Assembly: GCF_000142905.1 (NCBI RefSeq)
Contig: NW_013657635.1
Coordinates: forward strand, 1-64,000
Direction of reading: 5' to 3'
Length of the DNA: 64,000 nt
Source: Thecamonas trahens ATCC 50062
Lineage: Eukaryota; Protista; Apusomonadida
Under the pieces are notes generated by a model that was given only the letters and a program-made list of their open reading frames with translations, searched no databases and was not told the DNA's origin. Made by a program: the position numbers and the translations under genes. Of the stretch, positions 1-14,266 are shown one piece after another (position 1 is the first letter of the stretch; every line of letters starts with the position of its first letter).

Positions 1-235
1 CCTAACCTACCTACCTACCTACCTACCTACCTACCTACCTACCTACCTACCTACCTACCTACCTACCTACCTACCTACCTACCTACCTACCTACCTACCT
101 ACCTACCTACCTACCTACCTACCTACCTACCTACCTACCTACCTACCTACCTACCTACCTACCTACCTACCTACCTACCTAACCCTAACCCTAACCCTAA
201 CCCTAACCCTAACCCTAACCCTAACCCTAACCCTA
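1..235. repeat. Telomeric repeat tract (chromosome left end): CCTAA, then (CCTA)x44, then (ACCCTA)x9
   Basis: Read directly. 6-181 is perfect CCTA; 182-235 is canonical CCCTAA/TTAGGG with the C-strand on +, as expected for a left chromosome end. Confidence 0.9.
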
Positions 236-3571: not shown

Positions 3572-3731
3572 CCCCACCTCGCCTCACATCCATAACTCCA
3601 TCAGCTACGGCCGACTTGCTCTGCCTCGTCTCGTGCTCCTCCTGCCTGCTGCGCCTCTCAACAAACTGCGCCAAATCTGTGTGACGGCACTTCTCTCCAA
3701 CTGCCGCCTCTCGCCTCCCCCACCGGCGGCC

Positions 3732-5449
3732 ATGGCCGAGACCCCCGCCTCGCCCCACCCACCACCAGGCAGTGGCATCCACTTTGGCCGATACACCACC
3801 GTCAAGGAGCTTGGTCGCGGTGCCTTCTCCATTGTATACCTCGCCAAAGCCGTGCCTGCCAAGAACAGCAGCAGCTGCAGCAGCAGCAGCAGCAGCGGCA
3901 ATGACGAGTGCGACAATGGCCAACCGCCATGTTCTCCCGCCCAACCGCTGGCCGTTGTCAAGGCCTTACAAGTCGGCAAGTACACCAGGAAGATGGTCCT
4001 TCACACCATGACAGAGGTCACCGTCCTCTCAGGCGTCTCTCATCCGTGTCTTGTTGGCTATGTCGAGTCGTTTGCCGCGGACGCCAGCACCGTTGTCATT
4101 GTCATGGAGCATGTCGCCGGTGGCGACTTGACCCATGCTGTCGATGCTCTTGCTCCGTCGCCGCAATCTTCCCCACCTCATCCTCCGCTCTCGCCCATTG
4201 CTGTGGTGGATGTTCTCGTGCAAACCGCTCTTGCACTGGCCTACATTCACTCGCGTGGCATTGTCCATCGCGACGTCAAGGCCGACAACGTCTTCCTCAC
4301 CCCCGACGGCGGCATCAAGCTCGGCGACTTTGGGCTAGCCTTTGTGGCCTCGGACTCCGGCGACGACTCCCTCTCGCCATCAGCCTCAGACTCCGAGTCA
4401 ACGCCCGGGCTCCGTGTTGTCCCCTCAGGCATGCTCGGCACGCCTCTTAATCTGGCTCCCGAGATCACGCAGGGCCTCGAGTATGGCGCCCCTGCCGATG
4501 TCTGGGCGCTTGGCTGCCTCCTCCACCAGCTCACCACTGGTCGTCCAGCATTTGTCGCCGACAACTTTCACCTTTTGCGCCGGGCGATCAACAAAGGCCC
4601 GACGCCGCGGCTGCCCAAGCCCCTTGCTCCGCTCCAGCCTGTTCTCGACGGCTGCCTCGCCAAGGATCCTACTGATCGGCTCTCGGCCGGCGAGCTCCTG
4701 ATGCTGCCACTGATGGCGCACAGAGCCGCCGGTATGTTCCTCCTCTCCTTCTTTCCTACTCGAACGTCGACGCCGCTGCCGCTGCCGCCGCTGCCGCTGC
4801 CGGCCCTATGCCCATCACTCCTACTCCCGACGACGCCGCCCGCCTCCTCCGCTTGCACTCAGTCTACTCCGATTGGACCGAAGACTCACTGCCTCAGCTG
4901 GATGTGGTGACGTTGTCTATCCCGCTCAGCTCTGACGGCTGCACCACTCCTGAGCTCCTCTCGCCGCACCGCGCCGGCATGCCGCCGCTGTGCGGCTCGC
5001 GATCAAGCGATAGCCTCTGCTCGCCTGAACGCGCCTTTCGCCCGCTTGCCAAGCGCTACCGCGATCTGCGCCGCAAGGAGACTGGCAGCGATATCTTTTC
5101 CAGCGATGACTCGGCACGCAACTTCCGGCTGCGCTCCAACTCGATTGCGCAGGTCGACGTTCTTGTCCGCATGCGGAACAGTTCCGTCTCGGTCTCTGAC
5201 TCTCCGCTCACCATCTCTACCATTCTTGCTGACAACGACGGCCAGGTCTCAGACGTCTCGGACATATCATTGCAAAGCGACTCGGACAACACATCGTCGG
5301 CGTCCTCCTCCTCCTCGTCGTCGTCGTCATCGTCCCCCTCGTCTCCCCGGGAACGTCCGCCTCCGGCCTCGCGGCCGCCTATGCCAACCGCTGACGCCGA
5401 CTCGGACTCGGACTCATCCTCGCTCGACGAGTTTACCTTTGGCGGATGA
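3732..5449 (+). CDS. NEK (NIMA-related)-like Ser/Thr protein kinase with Ser-rich tail
   Basis: LGRGAFSIV, AVVK, HRDVKADN, DFG, GTPLNLAPE, DVWALG. The tail lies in ORF 4808-5449. It is joined either by one missing C at about 4756 or by an in-frame GT-AG intron 4732-4862. Confidence 0.85.
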
Positions 5450-5491: not shown

Positions 5492-8400
5492 TCATCCCCA
5501 GTGACCGTGAGGCAGCAGCGCCTGCAGCATCTCGAACACTGCCGGCCCAAACCCTCCGGCGGCAAGGTCCAGTGCCCGCGCCTGCGCCTCCTTGATTTCG
5601 GTCAGCACAGCGTATGTGTCCTCCGCAAAGTCGGCCGCAATCGAGTCCTCGTTCGTGTCGCGGTTGTAGACAACAAGCACTGAGACCATGTCAAAGATGT
5701 CGTTGTGCGTTGCCAGCGTCGCCAGCACTGGATACGACGTCACCAGCTGGCCCACAAGCGCTGCAGCCTCGGCCATGATCGCCGCCGACCGCGTTGGGCA
5801 GAGGAACGGCGACGAGTCCCGGATGTGCTCCAGAATCGTCCGCGCGTACGGCTCAAACTCGCCCGGCACCGGCCCGCCCTCCGGCACTGCAAAGTGTACA
5901 ATAGACCGCGCCGAGAAGAAGAACGCCTCCAGATTAGCAAAGTACGTGTACGAGTCGGCCACCGTCGTCCAGAACGGCGACTCGTAGTCCGCCAGCGGGC
6001 CCGAGAGCACCGCCCGCTTGGCCGCTGCCACCTTCTCCGCATGCGCCGCTGCCTCTGCTGCATGCTCCGCGCAGCACGAGCTCTCAAGCGACCGGTCCAC
6101 CGGCGTGTCCGGCGCAGGCGCAGACTTGAGCACCCGGAGCACAAAGTTGAAAATCGTCTCCAACCGCCCGTTCTCCGTCATGTGGTCCGCCACAATAAAC
6201 ACCATGTCCGCCAGGCAGAGCGCAGCGATCGCCACCGACAGCGGCGAGTTGCACCCGCACATGTTCTCCGACTGTTCCGCAGTGAGGAGCGCACAAGCAC
6301 CGGCGTGCGTGTGCTCCTCGCCGTGGGAAAGAAAGTGTTCGGCAGAGCTGATAATCCGCGAGACAACCTCGTCAAACTGCGGTGCGAGATGGTCCGCCGT
6401 GTGGTGAGCAAGCGAGCCGAGCAACTGCACGCACCGCTGCCAGACAGGATAGCACAGCTCCGGGAGGCCCGGGCCCGACAACGCGTCGACCACCCGTTCG
6501 CACACCGGCGCCAGCTCGCGCTCGAGGTCCGGCATCGACGACAGGATCGAGATGGCAAACGAGAACACGAGCGAGGCCTCGGCCTTGGCAATGTGCACCG
6601 AGTCGTTGATGTCGTCCTCCTCAAGAACGTCGGCCACATAGTCGACGAGGTCGCAGACCACATCGATGCTCCGTTGCGACTGCAACAGCAGCGGCACAAT
6701 CGGCCCCAGCGCATGGAGCACAAAGGCTCGCACGTCAGCAAGCGGTGGCTCGTGCGCCGCAGAGCAGAACCGACACTTTCCGTTGCCGTCCGTGTTCGAC
6801 ATAAACTCGATCCGCCCCACCACGTGTGCAAATCGTGACCTGTGCGAAACCGGCGACGTCTCATCGGACATCCGCACCGCGGGAAGGTTGCCGCGGAAGA
6901 GCAGCGAAATGAGGTGCGCCGCCACACCTTCGATCTGTTCCACAACCGCCGGATCCACCACAAGCCGGTCTTCGACCGGGTCAAAGTACGGGTTCATCAG
7001 GTTCGAGTTCGACGACTCGAGCACCTCGTACCAGAGCGAAAACAGTGCCGATGCTGCTGCTGCTGCGTCAAACACGCGCATGTACGCCGCTTGTCGGATC
7101 GCCTCGTAGCCCTCGGGAACTGCAGGTGCTGCGCTGCCAAACGTACTGCTCATTGCTTGCACCGTTTCGCCCGAGACGCTCGCCACAAGTGCCAGCGCCC
7201 GCTCCAGCCGCTGCTCGGCAACGGTCGGCTCGAGCGCAGCGTCAAGCGCCGTCTCAAACGTCCGCGAGCTCGCTGATGACCCAGTGCCAGGCGTCAGCAG
7301 CGATTTAGGTGTCGCCACTCCGCCCGGTCTCGGTGTCGATGAGCTAGATGCCCCAGCTCTCGCCGCGCTCGCCTCATCCAACGCAGCTGAAAGCACCGAC
7401 AGGTCGTCGATCGCCCGCGTCAGCGTCGCTGCCAGCTTGGTCTGCGTCACCTCCAGCAGCGGGAGTGGCGACGCAAACGAAATGGCCATGTTGATGAGAA
7501 TGCCGCAGCAGTTGGACGAGACCAGCGCCTCGGTGTCATCCACTCGCGCAATGACCGCTTCCACCAGCTGCTCCTGAAGCTCCGGAAAGTCCGAGAGCGG
7601 CGTCTCGATCGACGAGGTCGAGAACGACGTCAGCAGCGGGACTGCGTTGGATATAAAGATGTTGGTCAGCGCCCATGCCGCCGTGTCGCGCACAACCGCT
7701 ACTTCGTCCGACGCCAGCGCCTCGATCGCCATCCGCACCACCTTTGGGTACATCGGATGCCCACGCGGGAGCGGCTCCGGCTTCTGCCCGGTGCCCATGG
7801 CGTCAGTAATGGCGCCGAAAACCAGGAGTCCGACCTCGCGCGCCCGCCACTCGCTCGACGCAATGTTTCGGCCGCAAAGCCATAGATCGCGTCGATAACC
7901 GACGGCATAGTCGAGTGGAACGTGACTAGAATCTGCGAGAGCGACCGAATCGTCGGATCTGTCAGCTCGGTCGACGCAGCCTGGGCCTTCTTCACCTCGG
8001 CCACCACATATCCGCTCGCCTCCAGCGGGCGCGACATCAGCGAGTTGAACAGCAGCGGAAGCAGCGTGTTGCGGATAAAGATGCCGTACTTGGCCGCGTC
8101 CTCCACCCGCCCGCCCATCATCAGCGCGGCCAGCTTGCGCGGGTCCAGCGACGACGGGAGCCCGCTGGCGGACTCTCCGGCCTCGGAGCTCTCACCGCCG
8201 TCACGGAACTCGACCAGGGACGCCTCGTTGGCCGCCAGCAGCGCCAACGACGAGAACACATCCAGCGCAGCCAGCGCAACCTTGACCTCGTCGGACTTGA
8301 TGCCCGCCATGGTTAGCTCCAGCAGCTCCGTCGCGTGCGTCTTGTATGCGTTACTGTAGATTCGCGGAAGAACCTTGCCAAAGGCACGGAAGCCCTCAAC

Positions 8401-8907
8401 GTGCGCTGCTGCGCACGGCACCGTCAGAGACGCGCCAATCAGCCCCACCATCTCCGAGTTGGCGGTGTCAAACCGGGTGGCGAGCTCGCGCAGGGTGTCG
8501 CCATCGACATCGGCGTCAACATCCACCCGTGCCCGTCCTGGCCCGGTCGCGGCTTCCTTGGCGGCTTGCAGCTCGTGGAAAGAGTCGTGGTACATCACCA
8601 GATGCGCCTTCCACGCCGTCCGCCACGGCTTGGGCTCCACCACAAAGCGCCGCCAGTTGCGGCAGGTCCCGGCCGCCGCCAGCAACGAGCGCAAGTCGAG
8701 ATGAAGAAAGATAGCCAGAACGAGCTCATCCGGCAGCGTCACGGCCTCCCCTTTGTCCGTCACAGCAAACAGCCTCGGCTCTTCCAGAGAGGCCACATCA
8801 ATGACCGCCATGCCCTTCTTGCTGCTCTTCCGGCTCGTCTTGGCCACTTCGTCGCTCGCTCCTCCGGCAACTCCGCCGCTCTCGCTCAAGCCGCCGCTTC
8901 CTGACAT
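5492..8907 (-). CDS. F-box + importin-beta-like HEAT repeat protein (one frame break at about 7867)
   Basis: F-box LPDELVLAIFLHLDLRSLLAAAGTCRNWR. Importin-beta1-like segments TMAGIKSDEVKVALAALDVFS, ENIASSEWRAREVGLLVFGAI (restored by adding one A) and DEVAVVRDTAAWALTNI. Confidence 0.8.
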
Positions 8908-9148
8908 TCGCCTTGTGCGGGGTATGGGTAGAGGTGGTTGGGTATGGGGTTGAGGGTGAAGTATGCCTACGTAACGTAAAGCACCTCCCTTGCCTCGCCC
9001 AACACCCCCCCCTCCCCTCCTCCCTGGCTCCCGTCGCCGGCCCACCCGTCCGAGGTCGCCCTCGGCAGGATGTCCGTGAACGACCAAAGTTCGTTCGTTC
9101 GCGGCTCACCGCCGCCACTCGCCGCCCGCCCCGCTCGCTCTGCTGCTG

Positions 9149-9182
<34 letters not shown>

Positions 9183-9320
9183 GCCGGCAATTGACCACTT
9201 GCCACTCGCAACTCGGTAGCACGATTCAGGGTGGTGGTAATGCGTAATCCGTCTCCTCCCGTCCTCCATGATCATTGTCATCGGGGGGCGGCCGACGGTC
9301 AGCCGTCACTTTCTCTTTGC

Positions 9321-11405
9321 TCAGTACATGGTCTGCTTGGCCGCGGCTTGGGCTTTGGTCACCAGCTGGGCGATCTTGCTCTCGACATCGGTGGAGAGCT
9401 TGTGCTTGGTGGCAAACTGCATCGCGACTCGCCGCGGGTTCGCTGACGGGTAAACGGTGAGCGGGATGCTGAGACCGCATCCGACGTCGAGCTGGAGGAC
9501 GCAGCACGGGCTCTCGTCGGGTGTCGCCCTGTCGTGCATGACCCCGCGCACATCCATTCGCCGGGTTGGCTGACCGCTGCCGCGCGTCTGCCGCCGGGTG
9601 GTGTCCAGCACTGCGCCGGCCTCTGCAATGTGAGACGCGAGTGCTGACGCATGCTGCGCCGGTAGCTGATGCCGGGTGGCAAAGAGCTCCGCAGCCCGGT
9701 CCGGATGCGCAAGCGTCTCGTGCGTAAGCCGGAGCGAGCTGGTCCCGCCGGACGGGAGCGGAACACGGAGCTCAGAGGCGACCGGTGCAGCAGCCAGGGC
9801 CGCTTTGCGAGCGCGGAGATGAGCCGCCACCTTCTCGACAATGAGCGTCGTGAGCGGCGTGACAAACGACCGCGGCAGCGCGTGCTGACGGATAAAGGCC
9901 TCAGCGGCCTCGCCCGCGTCGTCGTGCTCGTAGATCGGGAGGTCGCCCACCCGGCCGCTGCCGAGCTCCACCGCAATAATGAGCTGCGGCTCGCGCACCT
10001 CTGACTCGCCTTGGCTCCCGCTGGCGCGCCCTGACGATCGCAGTGTCGTGGCGGCATCGATTGACTTGACAAACTGCTTCGAGCCGCGGTCGAGCTCGTA
10101 CCGCGCAACCCGCATTGTGCTATTAACACCCATGCTCGCCCTCGCGCTCGTCGGCGGCGGCGACGCCTGGTGGTGAACAGGCTGCACGCTCGGCGACGAC
10201 AGGTCGCCAAGTGTGAGCGGCAGCGACGACGGCGCCGTGCCCGAGACCACCGACGGCGGAAGTGGCGTCCGAGGCTGTGGTGTTGCTGGGCCTGATGCTG
10301 CCGCCGCCGCAAACGTCATAGGCATGCTCGGTGGGTTGAGCGCCGAGAGCGCTGGAAGTGACGTCGACGGCGCGTGCGAAGGGTGGCTCACCGCTGGCTG
10401 CCGGGTCGGGCTGCGGACCGGCGGAGCGTGCGTCACAACCGGGGCGACTGGCTCGGCCTGCGCCGCCATCTCCGCCCGCACTGTGCTGACAGCAGTATCG
10501 ATCTCGTCCAGGCCATAGCGAATGACTTGGGGTGCATGGACCGAAGCCGAGGCTGCGAGCGCCGGATCTAGCCGGAGCGGCGGCAGCGTGTCCGGGTGCA
10601 GCGCCATCTGCGGGTCTTCTGTCGGCCGTGCCGCGCTGCGTGCTGCCGGTGCCAGGACCCGGCGGTCGATCGTGTACTTGCGGGCAGTCGAGCCGATGCT
10701 TGCGGCATCGACCTTGGACGATATCGACGACGCACATCGCGGCTCGGGCCGCTTGATCATTGTCAGCGGGGTGGTGGTCACCGGTGTGATAAGCGTCGCC
10801 GTCTCTGATGGCAGCGGGCCCACATACGTCGGCAGAACCTTGGAAAGCATGTACTCGTTCGCCAGCAGCGCCATAGACTCGAGCAGTAGCGCCACGTTGT
10901 CGGTCCGCGGCACGCTCGTCGCTGCAGCCACCGTCTCGGCATCGGGGACCTCGATCTCGAAATAGTACATCGAGTTGGCATCGGCAACAGCACATGCCTC
11001 GTCGACCGCCACCTCACGCAGACCAGCCACCTGGCCCAGGCGAGCGATGGGGCGAGAGAGGCCAACAAGGAAGACCATCTGCGGGACAAGGTCGACAATG
11101 AGCCGCGACTTCCACATGCTCAGAGCGAAGAGGAACGAAGAACGCGATTCGATGTCATACGCCAGCACAACCACATGTTCCAACGGCAAATGCTCCGGCA
11201 GTACCAGCTCATCATGTGGGTTATCGCTCTTGTTCCTCCCCTGCCACATCACCATCTCCGTCTCGTCCACATGAGCCACAAACGGTCCAAACTCACTCGC
11301 TACCGGTGCGGAGAGGCCAGGCTCGGCGTCCGCCAGAGCGCGACACACTCTCATTCTCAGTCCATGGCTCTCACCGTACACCGCAACAGTCATTGTCCGC
11401 GCCAT
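9321..11405 (-). CDS. Degenerate Rab-like GTPase domain + Pro/Ser-rich linker + three PFU-like repeats
   Basis: 694-aa ORF. Rab-fold remnants VAVYGES, VVVLAYDIESRSSF, MVFLVG, REVAVDEACAVA..YFEI. Three C-terminal repeats of about 50 aa ending AxxFxxxHxL. Confidence 0.65.
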   Translation of the reverse strand: MARTMTVAVYGESHGLRMRVCRALADAEPGLSAPVASEFGPFVAHVDETEMVMWQGRNKSDNPHDELVLPEHLPLEHVVVLAYDIESRSSFLFALSMWKSRLIVDLVPQMVFLVGLSRPIARLGQVAGLREVAVDEACAVADANSMYYFEIEVPDAETVAAATSVPRTDNVALLLESMALLANEYMLSKVLPTYVGPLPSETATLITPVTTTPLTMIKRPEPRCASSISSKVDAASIGSTARKYTIDRRVLAPAARSAARPTEDPQMALHPDTLPPLRLDPALAASASVHAPQVIRYGLDEIDTAVSTVRAEMAAQAEPVAPVVTHAPPVRSPTRQPAVSHPSHAPSTSLPALSALNPPSMPMTFAAAAASGPATPQPRTPLPPSVVSGTAPSSLPLTLGDLSSPSVQPVHHQASPPPTSARASMGVNSTMRVARYELDRGSKQFVKSIDAATTLRSSGRASGSQGESEVREPQLIIAVELGSGRVGDLPIYEHDDAGEAAEAFIRQHALPRSFVTPLTTLIVEKVAAHLRARKAALAAAPVASELRVPLPSGGTSSLRLTHETLAHPDRAAELFATRHQLPAQHASALASHIAEAGAVLDTTRRQTRGSGQPTRRMDVRGVMHDRATPDESPCCVLQLDVGCGLSIPLTVYPSANPRRVAMQFATKHKLSTDVESKIAQLVTKAQAAAKQTMY

Positions 11406-12830: not shown

Positions 12831-13448
12831 ATGGCCGCCAGCAACACACACCTACAGCTGCCATTACTCAAGATCGTGCTTGTAGGCGACGCGGGGACCG
12901 GCAAGTCGTCCATCATCCGACAGGTGACGGAAAAGCGGCTGAGTGAGGTTCCGACACGTCTGGGCGTCGCTTTCGCCAACTTTACCATCGACAATCTTGC
13001 ACGGCTGCAATTGTGGGACACCGCTGGGGCCGAGCGGTTCCCGAACGGCTTGTCGCGCCTTTTCTACCGTGCCGCAGATGCCGTCGTCATCGTCTTTGAT
13101 GCCGCCAACGCCGACTCGCTCAAATCGATCGAGACGGTCTGGCGGCAGTCGCTGGAGGAACACAGCATGACCGATCTCGACGGCGTCTCGATCTTCATTC
13201 TTGCTCATACACGCTACGGTGTAGAGCTCTCCGATGACATGGCGACGACGGCACGGACGCTCGCTGAGGAGATGAACGCACGGCTGTTCACCTGCGACGC
13301 CGCCGACTTTGACGGCCTCGAAAAGATCTTCACCAAGATCGGCATCGCTGTTACCGCCCGATCCACACGTGAGCGCATCGGCGTCAAACGCCCTACCATC
13401 AGCATCGCCAAGAACGACTGTCGCCAGACTGGATGCTGCTGTGCGTGA
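12831..13448 (+). CDS. Divergent Rab-like small GTPase, copy 2
   Basis: KIVLVGDAGTGKS, WDTAGAERF, FYRAADAVVIVFD, no NKxD, C-terminal CCCA. Paralog of copy 1 (shared TDLDGVS.F.LAH and TRERIG..DCR.TGCCC). Confidence 0.9.
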   Translation: MAASNTHLQLPLLKIVLVGDAGTGKSSIIRQVTEKRLSEVPTRLGVAFANFTIDNLARLQLWDTAGAERFPNGLSRLFYRAADAVVIVFDAANADSLKSIETVWRQSLEEHSMTDLDGVSIFILAHTRYGVELSDDMATTARTLAEEMNARLFTCDAADFDGLEKIFTKIGIAVTARSTRERIGVKRPTISIAKNDCRQTGCCCA

Positions 13449-13570
13449 CGCGTCCGATACGCCGTGCCGCCCGCACCATCTCGACGCAACCGCACCATTT
13501 GCTCGCTTTCGCACAGCCCGCCAGCCCGCACCACCCACTCCACCCCACGCAGCCCTCGCCAGAAGTGGGC

Positions 13571-14266
13571 ATGGCCTTTGCAGCCCTGCCCGACCTTCCT
13601 CCTGAGCTGCTACAACAAATTGCATTCGACTCTGGTGTGCTCGACCCCCCTGACGTGCTCGCGTTGGTGCTGACCTCCAAAGCGATAGCAGCCAAGATCG
13701 CTGGCACTGCCTTTGATGTCGATCTGTGGTGGTCACTCGCCGGTCCTCTCTTTGCTGTCCATCGACGGGCATGGCGGGCGGCACGGCTATCAATTTCGCC
13801 ACGGCGAAAGAGGCGATGGCCTGATCATGTGGTCCAGGGCGCTCTGGTCGCCGCGCTGGCGCATCCTCGGAGCGTAGTCGACTCATGGGATGAGGACGAG
13901 TCGGATGCTTGGCAGGACGCCGTCTTGGCGCTTTCAGCCTCGCCTATCACCGTCGATGGCGTCGTGCCGGGCTCGGTGACGGCATTGCTCCGCTGGTACG
14001 GTATTCGGGTCATTCCGTGGTCGGTCACCGATCTGGCCGTCATCTGCGACCACGTGAACGTTGTCGCCGCCTTGGCGACCTCGGCCGACACAGCCAGCAT
14101 CGCACGCTTGCTCCGCCGAGCCATGCGGTTTTCAGGAGCCGATGAGCAAATGGTGGAGCTCCTGCTTGGCCTTGCTGGTGCACACAATGTCGATCGCGGG
14201 GTGCTGGCGGCCGACGCCCGCGTGTGGGGCCGCAACGAGCTCGCCGCCCGCCTCGAGCAACAGTAG
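13571..14266 (+). CDS. F-box-like protein with possible degenerate ankyrin-like helices
   Basis: N-terminal LPDLPPELLQQIAF..DVLALVLTSK; C-terminal DHVNVVAAL / EQMVELLL helical repeats. Confidence 0.55.
   Translation: MAFAALPDLPPELLQQIAFDSGVLDPPDVLALVLTSKAIAAKIAGTAFDVDLWWSLAGPLFAVHRRAWRAARLSISPRRKRRWPDHVVQGALVAALAHPRSVVDSWDEDESDAWQDAVLALSASPITVDGVVPGSVTALLRWYGIRVIPWSVTDLAVICDHVNVVAALATSADTASIARLLRRAMRFSGADEQMVELLLGLAGAHNVDRGVLAADARVWGRNELAARLEQQ

Follow-up and report, generated by a model that had tools for sequence, protein, structure and literature searches.

A candidate F-box receptor with a HEAT-type solenoid, possibly of karyopherin ancestry, near a chromosome end of Thecamonas trahens

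Can a nuclear import receptor give rise to the substrate-binding part of a ubiquitin ligase? The question is raised by a gene close to one end of contig NW_013657635.1 of the protist Thecamonas trahens ATCC 50062, of which positions 1-64,000 were analysed here and are referred to as the window. The gene lies on the minus strand, spans the sequence from an ATG at 8907 to a stop codon at 5492 (~1,140 codons), and encodes an N-terminal F-box followed by repeats of the HEAT/ARM type, which occupy ~1,050 residues and are predicted to be entirely helical. The F-box is the handle that connects a protein to the SCF (Skp1-Cullin-F-box) ubiquitin ligase, and a preliminary description of the locus had proposed that the repeats are those of importin-beta1, with the Ran-binding end exchanged for a Skp1-binding module. 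On balance we favour an explanation in which the gene encodes an SCF receptor, its solenoid derives from a karyopherin, and the frame break that divides it is an artefact of the assembly. In this mechanism the F-box (residues 57-97) would dock on the organism's single Skp1, while the long HEAT-type alpha-solenoid would present the substrate-binding surface. A copy of an importin-beta1-type gene would have traded its first approximately four HEAT repeats, the Ran-binding IBN_N part, for an F-box-bearing N-terminus, and would then have diverged until only HEAT 6-11 were faintly recognizable.

Coding evidence and the frame break

The locus contains two long open reading frames (ORFs) on the minus strand, 7699..9087 and 5492..7798, which are in different frames and overlap by 100 nucleotides (nt). 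In the searches described below, piece 1 is the F-box frame from ATG 8907 and piece 2 is the second frame (786 residues), and each was searched separately. The limits of the gene and the position of the frame break are as follows:

8905..8907, minus strand: probable start codon ATG, the first ATG of ORF 7699..9087, where coding-type GC content at third codon positions (GC3) starts
7843..7868, minus strand: interval with the single frame break, holding the homopolymers AAA (7866-7868) and GGG (7843-7845)
5492..5494, minus strand: stop codon, which terminates ORF 5492..7798

Both frames display the codon usage of the host, and the GC content of codon positions 1, 2 and 3 is 0.65, 0.48 and 0.80, respectively. 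From 8840 to ~7940, GC3 in the first frame is ~0.8-0.9, and from ~7850 to 5600 it is ~0.8 in the second frame, placing the frame switch between 7940 and 7850. With the codon frequencies of four conserved T. trahens genes as the reference, the codon log-likelihood was +0.26 bits per codon for piece 1 and +0.31 for piece 2, compared with values of -0.3 to -1.3 for the other five frames. No stop codon interrupts either frame from 7699 to at least 7999. Ahead of its first ATG (7798), the second frame already codes for a well-formed HEAT helix, NIASSEWRAREVGLLVFGAITDA, while the tail of the first ORF past ~7860 is Arg/Ser/Trp-rich nonsense, its last ~50 residues being out of frame. The coding character of both frames, the helix encoded ahead of ATG 7798 and the nonsense tail of the first ORF thus point to one coding sequence with a single frame change inside 7843-7868.

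It could be argued that the locus comprises two separate genes, the first for an F-box protein of 402 residues (8907-7699) and the second for a HEAT protein of 768 residues that starts at ATG 7798. The latter product, an automatic gene call, is listed both in the protein collection and in the ESM Atlas, and no contigs on record were found to encode it. Such a division, however, would leave the matching HEAT helix stranded in front of the second start codon and the out-of-frame tail at the end of the first protein; it would also have to accommodate the overlap of the two ORFs on the same strand and the colinear order of the repeats across the break. We therefore consider two genes to be quite improbable. 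The contention of the preliminary description that the fusion is independent of the frame break stands irrespective of how the break is explained, as the F-box and the IKSDEVKVALAALDVFS block (residues 184-222) are located in one uninterrupted ORF.

The position of the break was refined by aligning the second frame with a profile of importin-beta1. The score increased from 68.4 to 76.9 when the second frame began at 7867 and fell to 55.2 when it began after 7843, and the AAA run is thus favoured as the break site. An undercalled homopolymer in the assembly, rather than a feature of the gene itself, is the likely origin of the break. Three cullin genes of the assembly are each divided between two frames, at AAAA, AAAA and GGG runs, respectively, and in these split genes the Pfam columns are contiguous, leaving no space for an intron:

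C23, ~166202 (L031): split cullin gene
C8, ~70250 (L032): split cullin gene
C19, ~107700 (L033): split cullin gene

As cullin genes are essential, their breakage at short homopolymers makes homopolymer undercalls in this assembly likely. Frameshifts elsewhere in this genome should also be taken as probable artefacts, since the assembly breaks even essential genes. An intron was also considered as the source of the frame change. There are 54 GT-AG pairs of length 3k+2 that could formally restore the frame (7903-7854 is an example), but their splice sites are weak, coding character persists as far as the break and, given the split cullins, a homopolymer error accounts for the frame change more simply; an intron is therefore improbable.

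The break may, in contrast, be a real one-base mutation in a decaying gene, which would then be a recent pseudogene that makes no full-length protein. The gene is 5.5-8.9 kb from the chromosome end, as window positions 1-235 are telomere, comprising ~44 copies of CCTA followed by (CCCTAA)9, with degenerate repeats containing short inserts extending to ~277. Subtelomeric regions are rich in decaying genes, and the location of this one thus counts against an assembly artefact and in favour of a genuine frameshift. The first frame stops ~55 codons past the break, and the searches reported below returned neither orthologues nor paralogues of the gene. It should be emphasized, however, that the 786-791 codons past the break are still open and retain the full codon bias of the host, so that any inactivation would have to be very recent, and that short homopolymer runs of the kind at which the assembly breaks essential cullins lie inside the break interval. 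A real, recent frameshift is therefore unlikely, as is a pseudogene, and the locus is a real, and probably an intact, lineage-specific F-box/HEAT gene.

The F-box and its predicted contact with Skp1

The domain that the preliminary description had called a canonical F-box was readily detected, and its position is as follows:

8617..8739, minus strand: F-box, residues 57-97, matched by Pfam PF12937 and PF00646; a genome-wide F-box scan gives the same coordinates

Both Pfam matches are well above their cut-offs (F-box-like PF12937, E 1.5e-10, 41.1 bits against 24.3; F-box PF00646, E 2.7e-8, 33.8 bits against 20.5), and the top match in the Protein Data Bank (PDB) is the F-box of Skp2 (E 1.4e-4). 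The sequence displays the canonical contact pattern LPxE(L/I)...I(F/L)...L...C(K/R)xW, and the designation as a canonical F-box is thus upheld. As in an F-box protein, a separate, presumed interaction domain of predicted helical repeats follows on the C-terminal side, with signals for HEAT_EZ, HEAT and Arm.

The structure of a complex between residues 40-135 and the T. trahens Skp1 was predicted, and the pair scored 0.81, compared with 0.17 for the best of three controls; of 78 solved complexes, 51 attain the mark applied, as do 2 of 108 mismatched pairs. Contacts agree to at least 79% between runs, the partner has a predicted local confidence (pLDDT) of at least 62, and the predicted interface brings the C-terminal helices of Skp1 (residues 98-162) against residues 47-86 of the F-box region. 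Because Skp1/F-box complexes have already been solved, this result reflects likeness to known complexes and not binding, and on the strength of the model Skp1 binding by the F-box is plausible. Components of the SCF machinery are encoded elsewhere in the genome: Skp1 by one gene, cullins by at least four loci and F-box proteins by at least 81. The protein would then probably be a lineage-specific substrate receptor of an SCF ubiquitin ligase, the ligase role being a putative one.

For a protist whose genome is as small as 28.7 Mb, an F-box family of this size (at least 81 loci, alongside one Skp1 gene) is a considerable one.

Karyopherin affinity of the helical repeats

The repeat domain that follows the F-box can be divided into the following parts:

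7867..8616, minus strand: first part of the repeat domain, residues 98-347, in the F-box's own ORF, with host-like codon usage
8242..8358, minus strand: block resembling HEAT 6/7 of importin-beta1, residues 184-222, containing IKSDEVKVALAALDVFS, found with hhalign
7469..7867, minus strand: block resembling HEAT 9-11 of importin-beta1, in the second frame, reading NIASSEWRAREVGLLVFGAI ... VVRDTAAWAL ... SSNCCGIL
7235..7342, minus strand: Ser/Ala/Gly/Pro-rich low-complexity loop within the solenoid, from the translation
5495..7468, minus strand: remaining ~650 residues, predicted all-alpha helical repeats with host-like codon usage

The three peptides that the preliminary description had quoted as evidence of importin-beta1, VVRDTAAWAL among them, are all present in the translated sequence. 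The matches to importin-beta1 are short, ~40 and ~130 residues, and are colinear in order. In profile comparisons with hhalign, for which the importin-beta1 and transportin profiles were built from alignments of 56 and 58 sequences, respectively, the HEAT 6/7-like block matched columns 261-299 of importin-beta1 with an E value of 3e-3, compared with 0.36 for transportin. The HEAT 9-11-like block matched importin-beta1 columns 386-494 with a score of 76.9 (E 3e-9, probability 96%), while the transportin profile gave 42.4. The addition of the five upstream residues NIASS contributed 8.5 to this importin-beta1 score and only 1.9 to that of transportin. At low stringency, residues 100-352 run colinear with importin-beta1 residues ~164-376, with a score of 31.4 against 12.6 +/- 2.4 for shuffled sequences.

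Comparison with 12 HEAT/ARM proteins of T. trahens itself also points to importin-beta1. In Smith-Waterman alignments with shuffling it was the top protein for both pieces, with a z value of 3.7 for piece 1 (the next protein reached 2.7) and of 5.5 for piece 2, followed by transportin at 4.8 and the rest at 2.2 or below. When the same 12 proteins were searched with phmmer, importin-beta1 ranked first for piece 1, transportin-1 and then importin-beta1 for piece 2, and the matched stretches were again colinear. The sole family-specific Pfam match is to TPR_IMB1, at the colinear place (E 0.22), although its 10.6 bits are below the cut-off of 29.1 and significant similarity to the karyopherin family was thus not found. 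Finally, for the 768-residue product as modelled in the ESM Atlas, the structural neighbour with the best TM score (0.51) is a Kap95 cluster, and karyopherins make up half of the structural neighbours listed for that model.

It could be argued, however, that the F-box is joined to a generic, fast-evolving HEAT/ARM solenoid that has no karyopherin ancestry, and that the importin-like peptides simply reflect the common HEAT_EZ/ARM consensus (W-x-x-R-x-x-A ... A-L-G-x-I and V-R-x-x-A-A-W-A-L). Several observations weigh against karyopherin descent and are consistent with this proposal. Importin-alpha and GCN1 score 59.5 and 56.0, respectively, on the same importin-beta1 profile columns, nearly as well as the gene does, and much of the signal is thus generic HEAT/ARM consensus; one GCN1 window, at 33.4, even exceeds the 31.4 of the first part. 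When residues 1-200 of piece 2 were compared with the PDB using phmmer, nothing was returned other than importin-alpha, importin-beta1 and a designed repeat protein, and the best match was importin-alpha7 (E 5e-4) and not importin-beta1, which was matched at its homologous residues 379-435 with an E value of 0.075. The whole of piece 2 gave nothing significant in the PDB (best match importin-alpha7, E 0.065), and the first HEAT part alone had no PDB match at E values up to 10. Near significance, Pfam identifies only HEAT_EZ, HEAT and Arm in the HEAT 9-11-like block. In the ESM Atlas, piece 2 has PSME4, MMS19, HEATR1 and similar generic HEAT families as its language-model feature neighbours, and not karyopherins, while the feature search with piece 1 returned nothing useful.

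The divergence of the protein also weighs against the proposed descent. Within the HEAT 9-11 stretch, 11 of the 17 near-invariant importin-beta1 positions are kept and six are lost, and one further conserved Trp, beside Cys468, is Gly in this protein. The ~650 C-terminal residues have no Pfam match and score 20 (E 0.1) on the C-terminal profile of importin-beta1, on which transportin scores 59-124. AlphaFold2 without an alignment gave models of the two pieces (pLDDT 42.3 and 35.7) that were too poor to use; the low-complexity loop has no secondary structure at residues ~170-196 of its model, which is itself of low confidence.

No relatives of the gene were identified that might strengthen the case. 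In a word-index protein search, piece 2 (786 residues) found only the gene itself. An exhaustive phmmer search of 1.84e9 representative proteins likewise returned nothing else, no karyopherin among it, and neither piece has a paralogue of the repeat region in its own genome, where similarity to other genes is confined to the F-box (residues 55-99). These searches thus give no conservation from which a function could be argued.

The generic-solenoid proposal is thus a real possibility, although one that we think somewhat unlikely. It does not readily explain why each piece on its own places importin-beta1 at the top of the 12 T. trahens HEAT/ARM proteins, why the matches are colinear, why the NIASS extension benefits importin-beta1 more than transportin, why the only family-specific Pfam match is to TPR_IMB1, or why Kap95 is the closest structural neighbour of the Atlas model. 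Descent of the solenoid from a duplicated karyopherin of the importin-beta1 type is therefore plausible and unproven, since several weak, independent and colinear signals agree on importin-beta1, while generic HEAT/ARM controls come close and ~650 C-terminal residues lack similarity; we regard such descent as rather probable. Thus, the claim that segments of the protein match importin-beta1 stands in so far as this is the best family and the order is colinear, and is weakened by the shortness of the matches, the near-equal scores of importin-alpha and GCN1 and the sub-threshold TPR_IMB1 hit. The broader claim that the whole solenoid was built from importin-beta1 has the colinear signals on its side, and the close generic controls and the long stretch with no similarity against it.

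The N-terminal end of the protein presents a clearer picture. IBN_N (PF03810), the N-terminal, Ran-binding part of importin-beta, had no match in either piece at E values up to 1 and is not present on this contig, the nine IBN_N loci of the genome all being on other contigs. There is no room for an IBN_N exon upstream of the ATG, as a (GA)n-rich spacer of 410 nt reaches to the neighbour's stop codon at 9321. The protein therefore fails membership of the karyopherin family on the domain that defines its N-terminus. The genome encodes a separate, intact importin-beta1 elsewhere, an 859-residue ORF with an E value of 1e-171 to human KPNB1, whose presence the preliminary description had proposed to confirm, and a transportin-1 is also found elsewhere. 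Each of these two sequences is identical to a protein listed by NCBI for Thecamonas trahens ATCC 50062. Its proposal that the Ran-binding end had been replaced by a Skp1-binding module holds to the extent that IBN_N is absent and the F-box occupies its place, Skp1 binding itself being plausible from the modelled complex.

In its strongest form the preliminary description suggested a Ran-insensitive derivative of importin-beta that binds the IBB domain of importin-alpha, cargo with a nuclear localization signal, or FG-nucleoporins, and that either ubiquitinates these partners or carries SCF through the nuclear pore. Importin-beta1 would here have been rebuilt with a Skp1 handle in place of the Ran switch, part of its cargo/IBB- or FG-binding surface surviving, and the cell could then ubiquitinate nuclear import components, or bring an SCF ligase to or through the pore. 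The missing Ran-binding N-terminus with an F-box in its place, and importin-beta1 as the nearest family, are consistent with such a protein, and so is the behaviour of N-terminally truncated importin-beta fragments, which are Ran-insensitive and stick to pores. The equivalent of HEAT 12-19 is, however, unrecognizable, six of the 17 near-invariant HEAT 9-11 positions and the conserved Trp have been lost, and TPR_IMB1 is far under its cut-off. Judged by its sequence, the protein would hardly have retained IBB, cargo or FG-nucleoporin binding, and this part of the proposal is very improbable. Thus, while karyopherin ancestry of the proposed SCF receptor is plausible, a link to nuclear transport is speculative.

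Known receptors and the chromosomal setting

The protein resembles importin-beta1 (KPNB1/Kap95) in being an all-helical HEAT solenoid with weak colinear matches to HEAT 6/7 and HEAT 9-11, and shares with it the motifs NI-x4-WRxRE...FG.I and V(K/R)DT.AW. In contrast with importin-beta1, the T. trahens protein carries an F-box where the IBN_N/Ran-binding N-terminus would be, its region after HEAT 9 is ~290 residues longer, its C-terminal two thirds are unrecognizable, and its TPR_IMB1 match falls short of the cut-off. F-box proteins with many kinds of repeat domain are standard, and the gene shares with SCF receptors of the Skp2 type an N-terminal F-box followed by a long repeat domain as the presumed substrate-binding part. 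It differs from these in that its repeats are HEAT and not LRR, WD40 or Kelch, and in that it has no orthologues.

The plant proteins ARABIDILLO-1 and -2 combine an F-box with Armadillo repeats (PMC4982054, PMC3989760). As these proteins join an F-box to a solenoid of the ARM/HEAT superfamily, the general architecture is already known. ARABIDILLO, however, contains LRRs and canonical ARM repeats and is conserved across land plants, and the exhaustive search of representatives revealed no sequence relation between it and the T. trahens protein. A literature search on F-box proteins in combination with karyopherin, HEAT or Thecamonas found no description of a protein of the present kind. The suggestion of the preliminary description that this particular architecture is undescribed thus stands as far as it can be tested, no relative of any kind having been found. 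HEAT-type solenoids also act as receptors in other cullin-RING ligases, such as ZSWIM8 (PMC13083262). Receptors of the ZSWIM8 type are similar in using a helical-repeat solenoid as the substrate-recognition module, but they dock through a BC-box and similar adaptor motifs rather than through F-box and Skp1, and are unrelated in sequence.

F-box proteins acquire new substrates by capturing new recognition domains. If the proposed ancestry is correct, a karyopherin-derived solenoid would represent a source of recognition domains that has not been recorded before, and a rare re-use of a nuclear transport receptor outside transport. The proposal carries modest weight, because it concerns one gene of one protist, a gene that is subtelomeric, evolves rapidly and lacks orthologues.

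Public environmental assemblies (European Nucleotide Archive, ENA) contain an apusomonad related to Thecamonas, whose importin-beta1 and transportin are 62% and 68% identical, respectively, to their T. trahens counterparts. No counterpart of the F-box/HEAT gene from this relative surfaced in the searches. These assemblies may hold orthologues of lineage-specific genes.

The neighbouring genes in the window are as follows:

3633-4907, plus strand: protein kinase (Pkinase, E 1.7e-40)
9324-11405, minus strand: upstream neighbour of 694 residues with a PFU domain (PLAA-family ubiquitin-binding, E 5.8e-7)
12831-13445, plus strand: Ras-family small GTPase (Pfam Ras, E 3.6e-21)

The F-box gene is thus adjoined by a ubiquitin-related PFU gene. 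ORF 13433-14263 had no Pfam match at E values up to 0.01, and the genome-wide F-box scan placed no locus at that position. The spacer between the two contains, just before the start codon of the F-box gene, a (GA)n microsatellite of ~40 nt (window 9150-9195, minus strand).

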